Below, in pieces: positions 3,388 to 35,231 of a stretch of DNA of 64,000 nucleotides; the first letter of the stretch is position 1, and each line of letters starts with the position of its first letter. This stretch comes from Epithemia pelagica (taxonomy: Eukaryota; Protista; Bacillariophyta). The notes below the pieces were generated by a model, which had not been told where the DNA came from, searched no databases, and saw nothing but the letters and a program-made list of their open reading frames with translations. Location of the stretch: contig OX337228.1 of assembly GCA_946965045.2 (NCBI GenBank), forward strand, positions 992,001-1,056,000, in the 5' to 3' direction. Made by a program: the position numbers and the translations under genes.

Positions 3388-6300
3388 ATGGATTCCGATG
3401 ACATTGATGTTACCTCAAATGGATGTGGATTTGTGCCATCATTGGAGTTATTATCCACCCTTCGTTGTGACACGCATGTCATACCATGGCTGTGTAGTGC
3501 TCTTGTCGAGATAAAACTGCATCATATCTCACTTTTAATGCTGTTCTTTCTCCAATCACCAGGCGGCATAAGCTGTGGATGTAACATCAGCAAAACTGCA
3601 AGTCCTCCTCTTTTGAACATTCGAGCTACCGAGTCATCTACCATTGCACGTTCTGCTGTACTTGGTAGTCCATCGTCTTCTTCCACCTCATCATTCAAGT
3701 CTTTGGCTTTCACCCTTTCAGCAGCTTCTGCTGAGAGAATGAACGCGTGCACTTTGGCTACTACATCAACCTCATCTAGTAGTAGCAGTCATCCGAAGCG
3801 AAAACTTGTTCGACCCGTGGCGTCCTCGTCCCCCTTGGACAAAATCAGAACATCTCCCGTCTGTAGCACCATGCTGGCTCCAAGAAAGTCTCAGGTCAAC
3901 GACAGTGCATCACACTCTATTGCAGAAGAAGCTCTTTCCACTGGCTCTGTGACAACTGCAAGGCATCATGTGGAAAAGGGAAACGAGAAACAAGTTCGTT
4001 TTGGAGCGAACCGAAGTGTAGCAACCATGGATGTTCCAGATACACAGGAGCAACTCGATGACGGTCAACAACCGCAACATCGATATGTCTCTCCTAGTCG
4101 TTCCATGACGAGCAATTGTAGTGGTGGAACCAAAAATCCTCTTCAATCGGGGGTGTCGCGAGACGAAGAAGAAGAGGATCATGGCATTCCGACGGCAGTA
4201 TTGGAATACAAAACCTATCGCAGTCCAGATCGAGCCAGTGATGCTCTGGTGACCAATGGGACGGACACATCAATGTCCAAGCTGGGCCACGGGGAGGACG
4301 TGCCGAGTTTATGCAGTAGTCGCAGCAACAGTGACAGTGCATCTCCAACCCTAGGAACGTCATCGGCTTTGAATCAATCCAAATTCACCAGTATTTCCAA
4401 GGCTGACAAAGTGTCCGAGAAATGCAAACCGGACACAAACGATCGCGCCACTGGAGGACGTTCGGAAGACGATGATGTAAGTGTTGTCACCCGAAAGATT
4501 TTTATTGAATTGTGATGGATCATATCCCTGACTTTTCGTATTGTTTTTAGTTCTTGTCTCCACCACCTAAGACGGCGTCATCCACAGCGGCACAGGTCTC
4601 GTCTGAATTCAAGTTCCTACCCACGTCCCCCAAGTCATCTTCCTTTTCACGTGCAACTTTCGATGAGAAGAAAGGATCGGACGAGGATGCTGTTCTTGAC
4701 AGGGAAATGGAGCACCACTCAAAGATGGGGGATGTCGTCGATGATTTTGTTCCTCAGACTCCTCGCAGTAGGGATGTGTCCACGCCGACTGACTTTGCGG
4801 AAGACTACGGAAAAGGGGGTTCGAATTGTAACTTGTTTGATACTTCGAACGTCTTGGCATGGCTCCAATCACCCACCGCGCATGGACTGTTCTCTCCCGG
4901 AGGTGGACTTGGATCCTTGATGAACACACCAGCTGGCAATGCCATGCCGCGTACACCCCGGACACCCACGGTTAGTACGTCGTTTTTCTTTTCAGATGTG
5001 GCGAGCCTACCCAAAACAACAGAAACGACCCCCAAACCGGATGGTGCCAAGTCGCAAAAGGGAGGTTCGAACATTATCTGTATATCGCCTCTTGCATCGA
5101 CTAAAGGTCGCCCGGATAACACTGTGTCGATCAACACTCCTCTAAACTTCAAAGATATCTTTGCGTCACCCAAGGAACGAGGTAAACCGTTGCCTCTATT
5201 GGGGGATACGCCCTGCAGGACGGAGCGTCCACGTGGAAAACAACGCAAGGGCAAGAGGGGTGATCCTAGTTTGGACGCTGTGCATTTGGCAGAACGTGAT
5301 CTTTACGAAGATGAAGATCTCAACGTTTTGCTACAACTGGCGTCCAATACCCCTGGAGTGGGTGACACATCCAATGGAGTGGTGTTTCGGTCACCGCCAG
5401 GCCTTAACAAAAAGGGGGACGCCGCGGAAGCAAATGGGGATAGTACATTTTCTGGGCTTGCACTGCCCATGATTGGAGGTGACAACGATGGGGAAACGAG
5501 CAACAAGACAAGACTCCAGCAAAAATCTGGTGGAAGAAGTGCCTTGACGGATGAAACGTTTGGTCTTCCGCAATTGGGAATGCGGTCAAGTTCCTCTAGT
5601 GGATCAACATCCAAAGAGATAAAGTCCAAACCTAGTACTGTCGGAAGCAGTAACAAGGTGCTGAACGATAAGTCGAACAGCAAAGAGAAGAATGTAAACT
5701 CCTCATCGGCAATGAAGTCATCTGCCAGTGGATCATTGCCCAACCCTTATCACATGGCGCCGCCCTTTCCTCCAGGCCCCGCGGACATGCATGCTTATTA
5801 CCCGATGTCAGGGATGCCACCTGTTCCACCAAATTCGACCGGAAGCATGCGTGTCGTTGTGGGAGGACAACCTCCTTCCCGCCGAAACAGCACCGGTGGA
5901 ACAAACAACAATAGTAGCAATGGAAGTGGAAAGGAGAGACAAGGGAATTCCCCTCCACCACATCCACCCTTTCATGAATACCCTCCTGCACCTGGCAATA
6001 TGCCATATCCGCCTCCACCTCCGGGTATGTTTTCCACTTATCCAGCCTACAATGGAATGGGCAGATATCCTCCATACAGTCACTATCCACCTCCTCCGCC
6101 CCGGCCGATGCCCATGTACAACGCACAGCGTCCTACATCTGCTGGAAGCGCCACGTCTACCAAAGATGTCAAACGAAAAGGCACAGGGTCGACCAAAGGA
6201 GTTGGTAGTGTTGGGCCGAAAGGAATCCCACAGGGAGTCAACAAAAGAGCAGCGCCTCCATCGATTGGGAAGCATGAGGGAGAGACTGTGGCACCGGCTG

Positions 6301-7371: not shown

Positions 7372-8429
7372 TCATGGCAATGGAGCAACACTGGTAAAGA
7401 CTTGTTGATTGGTATTCAAAAAGGGAAACTGATGAGGAACCATTCCCAGTTTCCAAAGAACAAAGGACCAGAGAATGGAATCACAGTCTCCACAGTGGGG
7501 CCAGGGATTGGCGGTGGGTAAAAACAGCAGCCCCAACGACGGCTTCATTATCCACAGGGACGGCGTGGCATACAACTTCCAAAACTCGGTCGAAGCAAAA
7601 CGAAAACTGGGAGAGCGTGGATTGTACGCCACCAACTCGGAGGAATAGAGTTGCATCCGAGGTTCATAGTGGGGCTGATGGTGCAGCCAAGCCTGAGCTG
7701 TGACAAGGGTTTGATTGATCGTCAGCCGAGAGGAGGAGGAGGAGGAGGAAGGGGAGTGGTTTGGGGGCTGTTCGAGCAAGCGCTGCCATTCGCTGTCCAC
7801 GGTGGTCATACCCTTTTTTCGTTTGGTGCGAGTCGGAAATTGCATCCACCCACCACTCGTGTCTTGGTTCCACGATTGTTGTTGTTGCAGCATGGCGTCG
7901 ATTCGACGAAACCAATGAGGGGAATCTTGAAGAACAACATGTTCATCATGATAGACAATGGTGGAACAGGACGACCACAAGGCATGATCGTTTTTTCGTT
8001 CATGTTGTTGCATGGAGGATGGTGGAATGGCGGTACTATTCCATGCCATGAACTTGATCCAAACATGTAGCATTTCTTGTTGTGGTGTTTGTCCTTCCAA
8101 ATGGGACCAGGACCTCCACCACGAGGATGGAGGCGGCAATGGCACGGTTGTCGTGACATGAATCCAGGGTAATGGTGGTTGATAGGATACGGATTGGGGC
8201 AATGGCTTGGTAAAGACCAAAAATTGAAAGTCATCCGTGTCAAAGCTGGAAGGAGGAGCAGTTGGCAGGGAAGGATTGTTTTGATTCTCCTGGGTAGTGC
8301 CGTCGTTCTGGTTCTCTGGTATGTAATGAAAGGTCACAATACAGATTTTCGTCCTGGAAGTACTCGAGTTGAATGGCAGGTTGTGTGGGGTGTGGCCTGG
8401 CCGAACAAAGTCTTTTTCCAGAGGCAGTC

Positions 8430-8490
<61 letters not shown>

Positions 8491-8952
8491 GGGACTTGTT
8501 GTGGTTGCTGCTTCGAGTGTGCTCGTTGTGGCTTGCCAAAACAATGCCATGCCTTGTCCCAACAAAAAGGAAAAGGCCATGGCAACCAACACCATTCCGA
8601 CACCCACGAGACTCTGCTCTATTCTAGGAGACCGTCTACCACCATGATTTCGGTGAGTGGTTGCTGTGGTTTGACCTGGTTGGTGTGACAACACTTCTGG
8701 TTCGGAGTGACTTGTTGTTCTTGTTGTTGTTGTTGTCCTTCCTCGTCGTGGTATTGGTTTGAAGGAGCTCATCCACGACAGGGTATTGGCAACAAACGAG
8801 TGTCGGTCCATTCTTTGGAAAGTACTGGCTGATTCTAGGTGTACTGATCTTGTGTCAATGCTTCTGTTGGTGCTGTTTGTTTCGTCGACGCGCAATGACG
8901 ATACAACGAGACGATCACACATCACACCATTGTCGCGCACACAGAATTCCAT
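7372..8952 (-). CDS. Type II membrane protein with poly-Thr stem, possibly glycosyltransferase-like
   Basis: 526-aa ORF with a single TM (LVGVGMVLVAMAFSFLLG), Thr-rich stem and globular C-terminus. Golgi-enzyme architecture. True start may be ATG 8811 or 8772. Function is a weak inference. Confidence 0.65.
8430..8490. repeat. (TTG)20 microsatellite encoding poly-Thr on the minus strand
   Basis: Uninterrupted ttg run seen directly. Confidence 0.97.
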
Positions 8953-9145
8953 CCATCAACGCCCCCAAATTGGTCTGACTGCCCCTTATATTTTTGATAC
9001 AGCCCTCTTTTACTCGGAAGTTCGTCGAGAAGGGTGATTCACCGTATCAATACGTCATCATCATAACTCTATTTTCTTTCCCTCTTGTCTTGACCCTGAA
9101 GAGCACCGAGAGAGGGAGAAGTATATTCGATACAGATAGTACAAG

Positions 9146-9637
9146 ATGATCAACTTGGCAAGGTATTACATGAAACTGTTGGTACTGTTGCCATTTTCAT
9201 GTCTGGCCTGGGTGTCGATCCCCTCGCCCTCCCGCATGGGCGTTCCATCCCTGGCAGCCACTTCTTCTGACGAGAGCAACCAGGTACAATCCATTTCCCT
9301 GCAGTCCATGTACGATTCCATGTCGGATCCCGATACCTTTGGTCAAGAAATGGCCGAATCGATCCAACGATGGTTGGATTTTGAATGGATGCCGCAAGAA
9401 ATTCACGCCAAAATGGGACAATCGTGCAAACAGTCCCTCTTGCACTGTCACCAAGACGGGGTGGACGATCTCATGTCGGTCATGATGACGGTCGCCAATG
9501 ATTTGCAAGACGATTGGGACAAGGAATACGAACAAGATGCCTTTGTCAGTTCGTGGGACGTGACGAATTACGTGTCGGATTACCTTACCAAAAAGAGTGG
9601 CATTGAAGGCTGTGAATGTTCGGCAAGGATTCATTGA
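9146..9637 (+). CDS. Small probable plastid-targeted conserved protein
   Basis: 163 aa. Signal peptide ending SCLA-W followed by a Ser/Pro-rich transit-like segment (diatom bipartite presequence pattern). Core IQRWLDFEWMPQEIH...FVSSWDVTNYVSD resembles conserved algal/cyanobacterial hypothetical proteins (from memory). Confidence 0.75.
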   Translation: MINLARYYMKLLVLLPFSCLAWVSIPSPSRMGVPSLAATSSDESNQVQSISLQSMYDSMSDPDTFGQEMAESIQRWLDFEWMPQEIHAKMGQSCKQSLLHCHQDGVDDLMSVMMTVANDLQDDWDKEYEQDAFVSSWDVTNYVSDYLTKKSGIEGCECSARIH

Positions 9638-30456: not shown

Positions 30457-31268
30457 TTTCTCTAATTTTTCGTTTTTCTCTAAATACAGCACAATGAGTC
30501 AGGGCGATTGGATAAGAAGGATCTGAGAAGTCACTTCCACTTACGTGCAATCATTTGAAGCCGTATTTGGTAGCCAATAAAGAGAACAACCAAGATTCCC
30601 AGTGCCACATGAAGCGGAAAGACTTTAAAAAACCACTGAATTCATACAAGGGATTGGATGAGCAATGGTCGGCAGAGCAAGAGGCACTTTTTGCCACTCG
30701 GACAACGGGAGGAACGTACGTATACACCAACAACGGTCAACAGCGGCATGGCGAAAGCCAAGTTTTCCCATGTAAGAAAGATATTGCCGCTATCTGATCC
30801 CATGATTCAGTCGACTAGAGCCAGTTCTCTTTGTTGTCGTCGTCGTCAAGCTTGGAGGACCCTTCCTGCGATCTTTTGGAGGGAACTGATTATTTATTCG
30901 ATTCGTAACAATCACCGTAACAAAACAGCGAGAGCGGAGGTGAGAAAAATGATCGGGATTCGGGACCCAATCATTGGTCCTGAACGGGACCGATTAGAGG
31001 GTACTATCTCCCCCAAATCTCTTCCTCATTTTTACGATCTGATCCTGTCCGATCGTCCCGCGTGAAGCGCGCGGGCCCTTTCTCTGGGAGATGGGGTAAT
31101 CCTGAGCAGGTCGCTACCTTACTAGTCAGATACTGACTGTGACCTATAGGAGTTACCGAACGCTTTTTCTGAATAAAGAACACTCTAGCGACAAAAGATG
31201 ATATACTGACTGCTAGTACTATTAAAACCCACCACCACCCGGTTCATAACCGCTACATATTTGTACTG

Positions 31269-32207
31269 CTAGTCATCTTCCACTTCGATCTGAAACACTT
31301 TCGCCTCACCATTTTCAATCTTCATCTGAACCAGATTCACCACTGCTCCAAACACCTTGTGATGCCCATCCAGATCTCCTCTGTATTTCTCCTTTAAGAT
31401 ATTGTAATGTTTCAGTAAATTGTTGACAGTTTCATGTCTCGCCCTGGCATCAGCCATCATCTTGTCTTGATAGTCATTTCTTCCAGTAGGTGTGACAAAG
31501 TAGCATCCAGAATCGTTGTAACCACCATCAGCAATCACTTTCTCATTCGGTAGTAGCTCTTGAACAAGCCAGTCTCTGGCAATCCGTAGGTCTGGCCAAG
31601 CGCCACAAGGGAATGCACCATTCCACCACACTATCCAGCCAGTTTTCAGGCAGATTCCCACCTCATACCTCACACCTGCTCCCTTAAACTTGTGCGAGTA
31701 CCATTTTGGATCAAAAGGTGACGGTTCCAAAATCCTGAAGTCAGTACCATCCAAACTAATGAAACAGACCTGTCCAGGTACACAACAATCAAACCTATTG
31801 TCCCATACAATCTGTTATAAGAACAACATCAATGGTCAGATATGAGGAGGACGACTTCATGGCAAATTCATGTAGGGCCATGTACTTACATAATTAAGAC
31901 CACTACACAACAAATTTACAAACACTTTGACCCACTTCCTGTAGGTCTTCCTCGTTGTTTTGGCTATTGAGACCATAACATCCTCTGTAGCATAGACTTT
32001 CAGAAAAGCCAATGTCCACAACAAATGACGAGGCGATGCACCTTTGGGCAATGAACTGTCCAGTTCATCCCACACATGAACACAGAGCAAAGGAGACATT
32101 CCAAAGTAAGAACGAAAAGCACGTGAGAAATCAAGTGAGTGTGAGTGTCTTGCTCTACCAAGCATTGGCAGAGCCAAGTTGATGAATATTCGTTGTGTCA
32201 CCAACAT
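31269..32207 (-). CDS. DDE_Tnp_4 (Harbinger/IS5-type) transposase, 286 aa after splicing
   Basis: Intron 31889-31812 (GTAAGT...TAACAG, phase 0). HTH-like HLLWTLAFLKVY, catalytic LDGTDF, ADGGY and RARHETVN, and WYSHKF motif. Confidence 0.9.
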
Positions 32208-32547
32208 GGTGGGAGAAAACCGCTTTGGAAAATTTGTGTTTGCTCAGTGTGTGTCGCGATGCTGACCACACCTTTACTCTGATCTCGGTCTGTCTGTGTG
32301 TAGTACTGTCAGTTCATTGGAACAGGTTTTTTGGAATTTCATCACGTTCATTTGATTGGCTGGTCAGTTGAGCAGCGACACTAAACTTTGTACTGTTCTA
32401 CATATAGTGACCAATTCGAATTCGTGTCCGGTCATTGGAACCGGCCTGGAACGGTGCAGAAATCGATTCAAAAATCGTTTTCATTCAAAAACTGGAATTT
32501 CTGAATGGCCCTACCTCGCCAACATCCTATTACTTTCTACATCTTAA

Positions 32548-32770
32548 GCGACCCACATATTGCCCTTATCTTGGGTTAACTGTGGGTCGCTTGATTATAT
32601 CATTTGAACGACTAGAAAGTGTCCTGGGTCGGTTTTGAAAAAACGACCTGGCTCGAAAAAATCGACCCAGCTCGTTTTTTTAAAACCGACCCAGGACACC
32701 TTATAAGTGCCCAATTCACTTGGACGAACGACCCACGGTTGACCCAAGGTAAGGGCAATACGTGGGTCGC
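32548..32770. repeat. Nested imperfect palindrome between the two transposon genes
   Basis: Outer arms 32548-32589 and 32729-32770 (38/42, all transitions). Inner perfect 18-bp arms 32619-32636 and 32682-32699. About 8 CGACCCA/TGGGTCG words. Confidence 0.9.
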
Positions 32771-32963
32771 ACTACTTTCAGAATTGGAGCCAAATTGGGC
32801 ATGGCCTCCTCGATTGAAAAATGGAGTCCATGATGAAAACCGACCCAGTCCGGATTTTGGTGAACTGTTTTTAGGGTCATAATTAGTTTTCGTGCGAACA
32901 GACCAGTCTGGTTTTGCACTCCCTCGCGCTTTTGTTTTACGTACTAATAGTACCTATACTCCG

Positions 32964-34033
32964 ATGACCAGGTCTGGCCGCAACACTTTGGGCGAGGGTG
33001 CCCTACTTTCGTGGAATTCAAAGTCAACAGATGCCGAATTCCTTGACAAAATCGTGTCAGAAGGCTTGATTTCGGAGAGCGCCACACCCAAATCTGTGTG
33101 GCTGGAACACGCTGTTTTCCAAAAGTACAAATTGGAATCATTCAGGTCGGCACTCAACAAAGCCAAAAGAAAATACCAAGTCCACTTGAAGGATCAACAT
33201 GAGAGAGAGACTGGTCATGAGTTGGGTGGTGGTGAGACGGCCCCATCTATGGATGGAAAGGTAAGGAACCCCAATGATGGAGATCTCAAACCAGCTCCTT
33301 CTTTGTTTGGGTCGTCCAAAGGACAAGGTAAGTGCCAGTGTACACTGTTTGTTTGATTGTTGAGTCACTGTCCTTACCTGTTGTGGTTTATTGTCTTTTA
33401 TGACCAGGTGTTGCTGCCAAGGTCGCTCCTGAGTCTGTTGTCAGTGACGATGCTATGGTGAAGAAAAGGGCGGCAGGATCCATGGCATTACAGGAGACAC
33501 TACAGGTACAACTACAACAAAAGAGGAAAAAGACGAATGAAGAAGACAGTGGTAATGACATGATGAGGAATTGGGAGCCTCCTCATGTCTTGACACAGTG
33601 GGTCGACGACAAGAAACAGCGTCATTTGGTGATTTTGGTGGTGTTGCCTACAGGTATTGCACATGAAGACACAACAAATTGCTTGATTGAAGTGGATCCG
33701 AGCCAGCTACAGGTACATGTGAAGGTAATTTGGCCTGACAACGCAACTCATATCCATTATCTAACCCAACACATGCCCAGAGAGTGGCATGTCGAGGAGA
33801 AAAACCTACGAATGAAACTTGCTTTGGAAGACGCCATGAATCAGATGCGAAAAAGAGAAACAGACTTTGTCAGGTCAAAGTTTTCTCTTTCTCTTCCTTT
33901 CATGGTCCAAAGCAGGTTCGACTACGAATTTATGTACGACACAACAAACGGATTCAGAGCGTTGTTGATTTCCCTACATGAGCCGGACGCACAATTTGAA
34001 GGCGGCATGAAGCACAAGATGGTGCGTCTGTAA
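32964..34033 (+). CDS. Transposon accessory protein (ORF2), 329 aa after splicing
   Basis: Intron 33328-33407 (GTAAGT...ACCAG, phase 1) joins ORFs 32892-33356 and 33455-34033. N-terminal helical domain, basic KRKK patch and beta-rich C-terminus. Lies inside the TIRs. Confidence 0.8.
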
Positions 34034-34265
34034 ATTAATGTAGTATGATTTGGGGCGGTTGCAAAAACCGGGTGGTGGTGGGCCTAAATCTTTCTATTAG
34101 TTCTCTATTTGTCTATGTTCATAGTTTATGCTATAGTACATCGATTAAGCGTTCTGGTCGTGTTCCGCTTTGTAGTCAGTCTTTGCCTGGAATGACAGCG
34201 AGCTGCTCAGGATTACCCCAGCTCCCTGTAAATTTCCCGATCAAAATACGAGTATTGAGTTTCTA

Positions 34266-35231
34266 GTGTCTATTCTACCCCTGTACTCACATGAGGACAA
34301 AATCCTCATATGAGTACACTTTCAAAAGAAGAATATCAAATCAATCATGTACTCCTAAGTGGTTTTTAAGTTCAGATTCGTAATCTCCATACTTGAAAAC
34401 GTACCCCGTGATATTCTCATGCTTTAATTGTGATGAGTAGTGACGATACAGTATCAAAAACAGAATTCATCCATGTTGGAGCGATGGTGATTTTCTAAAC
34501 TGAGTGTTTGGAGGGGATAAAACAGAAGACAATCAACCTGATGAGTGTTATTATCCCTAGTGATGATGACCAGTTGTCCTTTGCCTGATTGAGGCATCAG
34601 ATTGAGTTGGAGCGATGGTGATTTTCTAAACTGAGTGTTTGGAGGGGATAAAACAGAAGACAATCAACCTGATGAGTGTTATTATCCCTAGTGATGATGA
34701 CCAGTTGTCCTTTGCCTGATTGAGGCATCAGATTGAGAGAATTCAGCCAAAACAAGCCTCCATCACCACAGAGGAAAATTCTGAGACCGTAACAGCATTC
34801 GACACCAATACAGGGTCAAATGCGGCGTCTGAGCCTCCTGCACCCCAACAGTTCATGTACAGGAAGCACAGACACCTTCAGGGAACCAGGAAAGTGCAGT
34901 GGGAGACTCAAATCCGCCAATGCATGTGAAGACAGTTGAACTCCCTCGACAAAATGGTTGGATTTGCCCTACATAAACTGGATGGATGCATTTTCCAACA
35001 CACGTAGTGTCTTGCCACATAAACATAGAACATAATGGTTGATTGTGGTCTATTACTTTTCTATTTTAGTTGTTCATTTTTTTGGTAGAACGGCAGATTC
35101 CCATGGTTGGGATACATTTTTTGTCGATAGCTTCGTACTGTGGTCTACGTAGATATGATTTTAGTAGGATTGTCCTCATATGAGGACAAGCGCTGTCCTC
35201 ATATGAGGACAAACCGGGGTAGAATAGACAC
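34266..35231. mobile_element. Non-autonomous TIR element with palindromic subterminal sites
   Basis: ctagtgtctattctacccc / ggggtagaatagacactag inverted ends. TSD is either TA or CTAG (ambiguous). Palindrome tgtcctcatatgaggaca occurs twice at the right end, with degenerate copies at the left end. Confidence 0.8.
34475..34736. repeat. Exact 131-bp tandem duplication
   Basis: Units begin gttggagcgatgg at 34475 and 34606. Confidence 0.93.

Follow-up and report, generated by a model that had tools for sequence, protein, structure and literature searches.

The requirement for a transposase together with a Myb-like partner protein is treated as a hallmark of PIF/Harbinger transposons, and this two-protein requirement underlies the co-domestication of HARBI1/NAIF1, HDP1/HDP2 and ALP1/ALP2. 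An element in the genome of the diatom Epithemia pelagica raises the question whether the place of the Myb-like partner can be taken by a protein of a different architecture. The element lies in a stretch of 64,000 nucleotides (contig OX337228.1 of assembly GCA_946965045.2, positions 992,001 to 1,056,000 of the forward strand), called the window below and used for all coordinates unless another locus is named. It carries two divergent, spliced genes, one for a Harbinger-type transposase and one for a second protein, the product of open reading frame (ORF) 2, the C-terminal part of which is predicted to fold as a beta-sandwich of the HSP20-like type, as found in the alpha-crystallin domain (ACD) of small heat-shock proteins (HSPs) and in CS domains. 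On balance we consider it probable, with modest confidence, that this is a recently active, autonomous two-gene PIF/Harbinger transposon, in which ORF2 is the form that the obligatory second Harbinger protein takes in this clade.

Extent of the element and its copies in the genome

Copies of the element were fetched via an exact-protein index from ENA assembly ERZ21939226, in which the window is represented by contig ctg1332l (L012, 100% identity over 3.9 kb). Ten other loci of the same assembly carry the element, with 98.8–99.8% identity to window positions 31087–34225 and unrelated sequence outside; homology begins and ends exactly at these positions, which delimits a mobile element of 3,139 bp. 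At the outer junctions all eleven copies have perfect direct duplications of 3 bp that are specific for each copy: CTG in five (the window, at 31084–31086 and 34226–34228, and L010, L011, L013 and L015), CAG in three (L014, L018 and L019), and CGG, TTG and CCG in L016, L017 and L020, respectively. Copy-specific duplications at shared ends imply transposition of a unit of 3,139–3,145 bp, and the target duplication is thus 3 bp, mostly CWG. All four exons are open and all GT/AG splice sites are kept in each of the eleven copies, with indels that are in frame only. Compared with the window, nine of the ten others show a few substitutions and a single in-frame indel of 6 bp in exon 1 of ORF2; L010 is the most divergent. 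The exact product of ORF2 exon 2 is encoded on 16 contigs in the form P0162 and on 10 contigs in the form P0163, and the 90% cluster holds 42 sequence variants. The family is a young burst of an autonomous element.

These boundaries differ from those in an earlier note on this DNA, which had placed the element at 31226–34084, between 17-bp terminal inverted repeats (TIRs) and a TAA target-site duplication (31223–31225 and 34085–34087). The eleven-copy comparison refutes these ends, since the TAA triplets are internal sequence that is present in every copy, and the supposed 17-bp TIR is the inner block of an imperfect TIR of about 170 bp. The long TIRs (left, 31087–31253, plus strand; right, 34057–34225, minus strand) were recognised from an inverted-repeat pair and from the alignment of the ends, which extends over about 170 bp and has three conserved blocks, one terminal, a short one in the middle and the 17-mer as the inner one. 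The terminal block of the left TIR (31087–31138) opens with GGAGATGGGGTAATCCTGAGCAG, and that of the right TIR (34174–34225) reads GGAGCTGGGGTAATCCTGAGCAG on the minus strand. In the outer inverted repeat 31086–31138 pairs with 34174–34226; the terminal 52 nt are 81% complementary, as befits the TIRs of a PIF/Harbinger element, and the ends have the common pattern GGAG.TGGGGTAATCC. In copy L020 the left terminal block is duplicated in direct orientation over 65 bp (2036–2100), immediately outside the left end.

The inner blocks are found at 31228–31244 on the plus strand, 24 nt past the transposase stop codon, and at 34066–34082 on the minus strand, 32 nt past the stop codon of ORF2. They form a perfect inverted repeat of a 17-mer that occurs just twice in the window and that lies, in all copies, some 140 bp inward from the ends of the element. 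With both genes directed outward, this 17-nt sequence appears in mRNA sense (AACCGGGTGGTGGTGGG) after either stop codon, within or next to both 3′ untranslated regions (UTRs), and besides being a TIR block it could serve as a shared signal in RNA or in processing. RNA contigs for ORF2 pass through the inner repeat and reach 34113–34117, which fits a 3′ UTR located inside the element. A nested arrangement, with an inner Harbinger element flanked by the TAA duplication and inserted in an outer miniature inverted-repeat transposable element (MITE), was considered and rejected, because every copy carries the inner and outer parts together, the copy-specific duplications are at the outer ends, and RNA contigs cross the inner repeat. 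It is clear that the family now moves as a single unit; an older nesting of a smaller Harbinger in a MITE may lie in its past. The TIRs of the relatives L006 and L005, introduced below, are about 270–320 bp past the stop codons, which fits the outer ends of the window element better than the inner ones. The L006 element is bounded by 24-nt inverted repeats (5288–5311 and 8843–8866) and the L005 element by 36-nt inverted repeats (5307–5342 and 8811–8846), and both are about 3.5–3.6 kb long.

Gene structure and transcripts

The transposase gene is located on the minus strand. Exon 1 (32207–31890, with the ATG at 32207) contributes 106 codons and encodes the N-terminal region. It is followed by a GT..AG intron of 78 nt (31889–31812; donor 31889–31888, acceptor 31813–31812) and by exon 2 (31811–31272, stop codon 31271–31269), which adds 180 codons with the DDE_Tnp_4 catalytic core, for a protein of 286 amino acids. 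Exon 2 matches DDE_Tnp_4 (PF13359) with E=1.5e-8 and 34.8 bits, against a cut-off of 24.8, over positions 1–157 of the 158 in the model. The columns of the D-D-E triad (DG.D,.D.GY and RA.HE..N) are conserved over seven lineages, only the degenerate L022 copy being without the second D, and exon 1 is homologous in L001, L005, L006, L021, L022 and L023.

ORF2 is divergent from the transposase gene, on the plus strand. Its exon 1 (32964–33327) includes an N-terminal helical motif at about 33006–33179, and is separated by an 80-nt GT..AG intron (33328–33407) from exon 2 (33408–34030, stop codon 34031–34033), in which basic stretches precede the C-terminal domain; 121 codons, one split codon and 207 codons make a total of 329. 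Evidence for splicing was obtained from assembled contigs of two marine metatranscriptome runs, X1 and X3, that are filed under different studies. A 903-nt contig of run X1 joins 33327 to 33408, skipping 80 nt with GT..AG borders, and a contig of run X3 joins 31811 to 31890, skipping 78 nt with CT..AC borders on the plus strand (GT..AG for the minus-strand gene), with 100% identity and flanks of 120 and 167 nt. Both genes are real and are spliced as predicted. The earlier note had described an intact spliced transposase and a spliced ORF2 of 329 amino acids in head-to-head orientation, and this description stands, given the open frames, the exact splice joints in the RNA-library contigs, the DDE_Tnp_4 match and the opposite strands. 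In the glycine-rich spacer of ORF2 exon 1, an in-frame length polymorphism of 3 or 6 bp occurs at 33219–33222: the window and L017 lack 6 bp, L010 lacks 3 bp, and an additional TGG is present at 33222 in the environmental RNA contig from run X1.

The C-terminal domain of ORF2

Sequence searches with ORF2 were done exon by exon. A word search with exon 2 detected only five close relatives, and an exhaustive profile search gave 172 representatives at E<=1e-3, all of them unnamed, whereas Pfam returned no match for exon 2 or for pieces of it even at E<=10. An alignment of 54 sequences from this family (A3) has a common pattern of conservation. It comprises W.P.....W.D, a hydrophobic strand ending in LPSGV, and a hairpin with V.V...G..L.v.V.WP; about 35 variable helical residues come next and are followed by S...I.LPF.V, G.R.LYV.L and P..Y.

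The AlphaFold2 (AF2) model built on A3 has a predicted local distance difference test score (pLDDT) of 90.9 and a predicted template modelling score (pTM) of 0.81, and consists of seven strands with a helical insertion; a fold computed from the five-sequence alignment (pLDDT 40) was discarded. In this model, a seven-stranded beta-sandwich of the HSP20-like type (ACD or CS) extends over 33572–33985 on the plus strand, and a helical insertion of 37 residues (model residues 65–101, encoded at 33737–33847) separates strands 4 and 5. This insertion would occupy the place that the strand-6 dimerisation loop has in non-metazoan small HSPs.

Structural comparison of the model with 48,161 PDB representatives by VIA-align, which does not depend on Foldseek, gave small-HSP ACDs or CS domains for all of the top 44 entries. 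The best was the ACD of Sulfolobus Hsp20.1 (4rzk; Z 10.6, root-mean-square deviation 3.6, 86 of 87 residues aligned), and others were the CS domain of PIH1D1 (Z 10.3), Hsp16.5 (9.9), the CS domains of Sgt1 (9.1) and Shq1 (8.5), and p23 (7.3). In total 19 chains scored Z>=8, where the stated background of the tool is 7–8. The top 50 Foldseek matches in the PDB were nearly all small HSPs, together with USP19 CS domains, and the neighbours in the ESM Atlas were clusters annotated as PF00011 (HSP20) and a haptophyte PIH1_CS cluster. The only row from a sequence-profile search of the PDB was again the small HSP 4rzk, in two stretches that followed each other in the expected strand order (E=0.55). 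Short motifs reminiscent of HSP20 are present at matching positions in the model: LPxGv after strand 3, LPf.V after strand 7 and G.R.l.v.L in the last strand. The modelled C-terminal domain of ORF2 thus has an HSP20-like sandwich fold, and the scores leave ACD and CS domains unseparated (Z 10.6 vs 10.3).

The N-terminal motif and the basic linker

Upstream of the sandwich, ORF2 carries a motif of about 55 residues (S....LL..m..G.i.....P..V......F..Y.L..FR...NR.K...G), which has conserved aromatic residues and is predicted to form three helical segments. The motif is shared by 13 sequences, and in L001, L005 and L006 it again precedes the sandwich. There are also natural relatives in which motif and sandwich are encoded in one uninterrupted ORF (P0066, P0150, P0124, P0132, P0104, P0145 and P0148). 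Because these single-ORF relatives carry both parts, the two-domain architecture is family-wide and independent of the splice model. Between the two domains, exon 2 encodes the basic stretches KKR (33461–33469) and KRKK (33521–33532), of which lysines K40 and K41 are invariant among close relatives. The N-terminal helices and the basic stretch before the domain that the earlier note had pointed out were thus both found.

Searches with the N-terminal motif did not give it a name. Pfam had no match in exon 1 or in seven full-length relatives, a word search with the motif alignment returned nothing, and the Atlas feature search gave no usable match, the CDC45-like rows of low recognition being regarded as noise. 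The rows from PDB profile searches were all non-significant, a poly(A) polymerase (E=0.054) among them. At E<=1, the Myb and SANT models of Pfam matched neither the ORF2 exons nor the seven full-length relatives nor the ORFs in the intergenic region, trihelix models had no match in exon 1 or in those relatives, and no ORF of the element had a YqaJ match. This agrees with the statement in the earlier note that neither a Myb/SANT nor a YqaJ motif is visible. The wording "instead of Myb/SANT" in that note thus stands for the absence of a Pfam match; the motif, possibly similar to a helix-turn-helix, may be another kind of DNA-binding helix bundle.

Linkage to the transposase across lineages

Eight lineages have enough flanking DNA to show whether the partner gene lies next to a transposase: the window family, L001, L005, L006–L008, L021, L022 and L023; three further members (P0041, P0058 and P0088) were left out of the count because their contigs are too short. 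In all eight, a homologous DDE_Tnp_4 transposase is found within 3 kb of the partner gene, and in seven the two genes are divergent. L001, which is on the same contig as the window, roughly 80–90 kb away, is a degenerate relative with 54–66% identity and divergent genes; its ORF2 exon 1 is interrupted by a stop in frame at the codon for the conserved tryptophan. L005 and L006–L008 are also divergent, and the transposase of the latter has a precomputed DDE_Tnp_4 assignment. In L023 the divergent genes are 2.9 kb apart, with a retrotransposon integrase fragment between them. Two lineages are from red algae. In L021, from Gracilaria domingensis (VCMS01000372.1), the genes are divergent and 1.3 kb apart; in L022, from Agarophyton chilense (CBFFQO010029554.1), they are in tandem and 2.2 kb apart, and the transposase copy is degenerate, with a stop codon and without the second of the catalytic aspartates. 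The partner proteins at these two loci, KAI0556935.1 and CAN8071263.1, which were listed as "hypothetical proteins", are members of the same family. The earlier note had asked whether ORF2 homologues always sit divergently from DDE_Tnp_4 genes: the linkage holds for each of the eight lineages, but the divergent orientation does not, due to the tandem arrangement in L022.

Between lineages, the partner proteins have 14–34% identity, as compared to 33–56% for the transposases, and the two identity matrices are correlated (Mantel r=0.69, a value reached by 9 of 5040 permutations). In comparison with L001 the synonymous divergence (dS) is saturated, so that no ratio of nonsynonymous divergence (dN) to dS can be given, and dN is 0.25–0.40 in all four exons. 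Such dN values at saturated synonymous sites fit purifying selection.

Comparison with known systems

The element resembles the canonical PIF/Harbinger transposons (PIF, Ping/Pong, Harbinger3_DR) in its DDE_Tnp_4 transposase with D-D-E triad, its TIRs and its 3-bp duplication, as well as in having two element-encoded genes, both of which are presumably needed (PMC9179366 and PMC2836001). It differs from them in several respects: the second protein lacks a recognisable Myb/SANT domain and has a predicted HSP20-like beta-sandwich at its C-terminal end, the target duplication is mostly CWG and not TWA, the TIRs are imperfect and about 170 bp long as compared to the usual 25–50 bp, and the transposase is short. 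Judged by its sequence, the element can be classified as PIF/Harbinger-type on the basis of transposase domain, triad, TIRs and 3-bp duplication, with a Myb-like partner as the one hallmark that is not recognised.

Elements of the ISL2EU group likewise combine a DDE_Tnp_4-type transposase with a second gene that is not Myb-like, in their case for a YqaJ nuclease, and make a 2-bp target duplication. Because it has no YqaJ partner, the window element does not belong to ISL2EU, from which it also differs by its 3-bp duplication. With small HSP ACDs (PF00011) and CS domains (PF04969; p23, Sgt1, PIH1D1, Shq1, NudC), the C-terminal domain of ORF2 shares the seven-stranded sandwich topology in the model (Z 7–10.6, 80–100 residues aligned), and with small HSPs also the short motifs described above. 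In contrast to these proteins, ORF2 has no family-level sequence match and is encoded by a transposon, and it possesses the insertion between strands 4 and 5, the N-terminal helical motif and the basic linker.

The third system that invites comparison is the IDM complex of Arabidopsis, an assembly of the Harbinger-derived proteins HDP1 and HDP2, which contribute a transposase fold of Harbinger type, with the ACD-fold proteins IDM2 and IDM3 (PMC5339849). In this case, however, the components are domesticated host genes at separate loci, and HDP2 retains a Myb-like domain. Full-text literature searches for Harbinger in combination with alpha-crystallin domain, HSP20 or diatom found no description of a partner such as ORF2, with thin coverage of subscription journals and Repbase reports, and matched only the Arabidopsis IDM papers and unrelated texts; this is in line with, but weak evidence for, the suggestion in the earlier note that the partner is undescribed. 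New in the present work are the corrected boundaries, the finding of a two-gene family that is intact and transcribed, the conserved motif at the N-terminus of ORF2, the occurrence of the pairing in red algae and the co-divergence test.

A possible mechanism and its alternatives

Harbinger transposition requires the transposase plus a second element-encoded protein, according to PMC2836001, and this second protein is typically Myb-like (PMC9179366). In the mechanism that we propose, ORF2 would take the role that the Myb-like partner has in canonical Harbingers. Its N-terminal motif would recognise the long three-block subterminal repeats or TIRs, the basic linker, which resembles a nuclear localisation signal, would bring the complex into the nucleus, and the sandwich with its family-specific helical insertion would serve as a protein–protein module that binds the transposase and/or self-associates, thereby assembling the transpososome. 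A more far-reaching proposal, which we put forward tentatively and would not call probable, is that a clade spanning diatom-like and red algae has swapped the Myb-like cofactor for an HSP20-fold adaptor with its own small DNA-binding motif.

Several points weigh against assigning this role and this fold to ORF2. A search of the ends for short repeated motifs, as candidate sites for the predicted binding of ORF2, gave no clear one, only ACTGACT, which occurs three times. The best PDB profile row for the N-terminal motif, a FadR/GntR winged helix over 52 positions, is not significant (E=0.36). As to the sandwich, the fold rests on one deep-alignment AlphaFold model, the quality of which depends on A3, and the best Foldseek match is borderline, with E=1.8e-3 and none at or below 1e-3. 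None of the 54 family members matches Pfam HSP20 (PF00011) or CS (PF04969) at E<=0.1, and membership of an HSP20 or CS sequence family was not found for the seven full-length relatives either. Of the ACD-like C-terminus claimed in the earlier note, the beta-sandwich fold and the strand motifs that match the model can therefore be retained, and the family assignment and the distinction between ACD and CS cannot. The Mantel signal comes largely from two close pairs, and the RNA evidence consists of contigs from environmental libraries that are 98–100% identical to the window, rather than of reads from the source strain.

Four other explanations were considered. The N-terminal motif could be a very divergent three-helix domain of the Myb/SANT type, which would make ORF2 an ordinary Myb-like partner with an acquired C-terminal sandwich. 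The size of the motif, its three predicted helical segments, its conserved aromatic residues and its location, where canonical partners have their DNA-binding domain, would all suit this idea; yet neither exon 1 nor any of the seven full-length relatives is recognised by a Myb, SANT or trihelix model of Pfam, and the PDB profile search retrieved no Myb structure, its best, non-significant row being of the GntR type. We regard this explanation as unlikely. About the same low probability is given to the possibility that the sandwich is a co-chaperone module of the CS/p23 type, by which ORF2 recruits host Hsp90 or Hsp70 for folding of the transposase or assembly of the transpososome, with no part in DNA binding or import. 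The CS domains of PIH1D1, Sgt1, Shq1 and p23 are Hsp90 co-chaperone or assembly-factor modules. They score as high as ACDs in the structural comparison, and a PIH1_CS cluster is among the Atlas neighbours. What argues against a CS-type function is that the motifs which follow strands 3 and 7, and the one in the last strand, resemble the HSP20 consensus and not that of CS domains, that the profile match is to the small HSP 4rzk and no sequence match to PF04969 exists, and that such a function offers no explanation for the conserved motif at the N-terminus or for the basic linker.

The Arabidopsis analogy suggests the possibility of an anti-silencing role, in which ORF2 would counter silencing or DNA methylation of the element by the host. 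In favour of this, the element family is young, intact and transcribed, and the earlier note had stated that ACD proteins act together with the Harbinger-derived HDP1 and HDP2. Indeed, HDP1, HDP2, IDM1, IDM2, IDM3 and MBD7 co-purify, but a direct partnership is not borne out: HDP1 and HDP2 contact neither IDM2 nor IDM3 in yeast two-hybrid or split-luciferase assays, so that the parallel is indirect (PMC5339849). Moreover, no relation between the sequences of ORF2 and plant ACD proteins was detected, and we consider an anti-silencing role quite improbable. The least probable explanation, to which we give hardly any weight, is that ORF2 is passenger cargo, a captured host gene that has no role in transposition. 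A passenger would not be expected to remain tied to the same transposase clade in all eight lineages with enough flanking DNA, which range from the source genome to red algae and have partner identities of 14–28%, to co-diverge with the transposase, or to be intact in eleven of eleven young copies. Furthermore, the element has no other second gene, whereas Harbinger-type elements normally require one (PMC2836001).

If the role of second Harbinger protein proposed here for ORF2 is correct, the cofactor slot of PIF/Harbinger elements can be filled by a different protein architecture, based on a chaperone-type beta-sandwich. If the more far-reaching proposal holds as well, a sandwich of the crystallin/CS type would act as a transposase-binding, transpososome-assembling module, and the element would be a transposon-borne counterpart of the partnership of ACD proteins with Harbinger-derived proteins in the plant IDM complex. 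Since the element is young, intact, transcribed and present in multiple copies, it provides a direct test system for the cofactor question. The analysis also offers a name for 172 hitherto unnamed protein clusters, including the Gracilaria and Agarophyton "hypothetical proteins", and the corrected boundaries matter for annotation and reconstruction of this element family.

The intergenic region and neighbouring sequences

The divergent genes are separated by 756 bp (32208–32963), presumed to be a shared bidirectional promoter. ORFs in this region have no Pfam match and no further gene was found in the 756 bp; an Rfam search of the element gave no match either. The region contains a palindrome of 223 bp (32548–32770), an inverted repeat with 109-nt arms that are 79% complementary, and this palindrome is present in every copy of the element. 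Because L001, a distant relative, has a related stretch of 59 bp between its two genes (5305–5362), the palindrome may be an ancient component of the promoter region and not an insertion. Related sequence is also found just outside both ends of copy L017 (2034–2097 and 5265–5419), as if this copy had landed within a free-standing member of a MITE-like family.

Two neighbouring features are of a different kind. About 700 bp past the degenerate relative, L001 contains a gene for a piggyBac-type transposase of 702 amino acids (DDE_Tnp_1_7; 7412–9520). In the window itself, some 250 bp beyond the right end of the element, a 132-bp unit is present in two perfect tandem copies (34475–34606 and 34606–34737, together 34475–34737).

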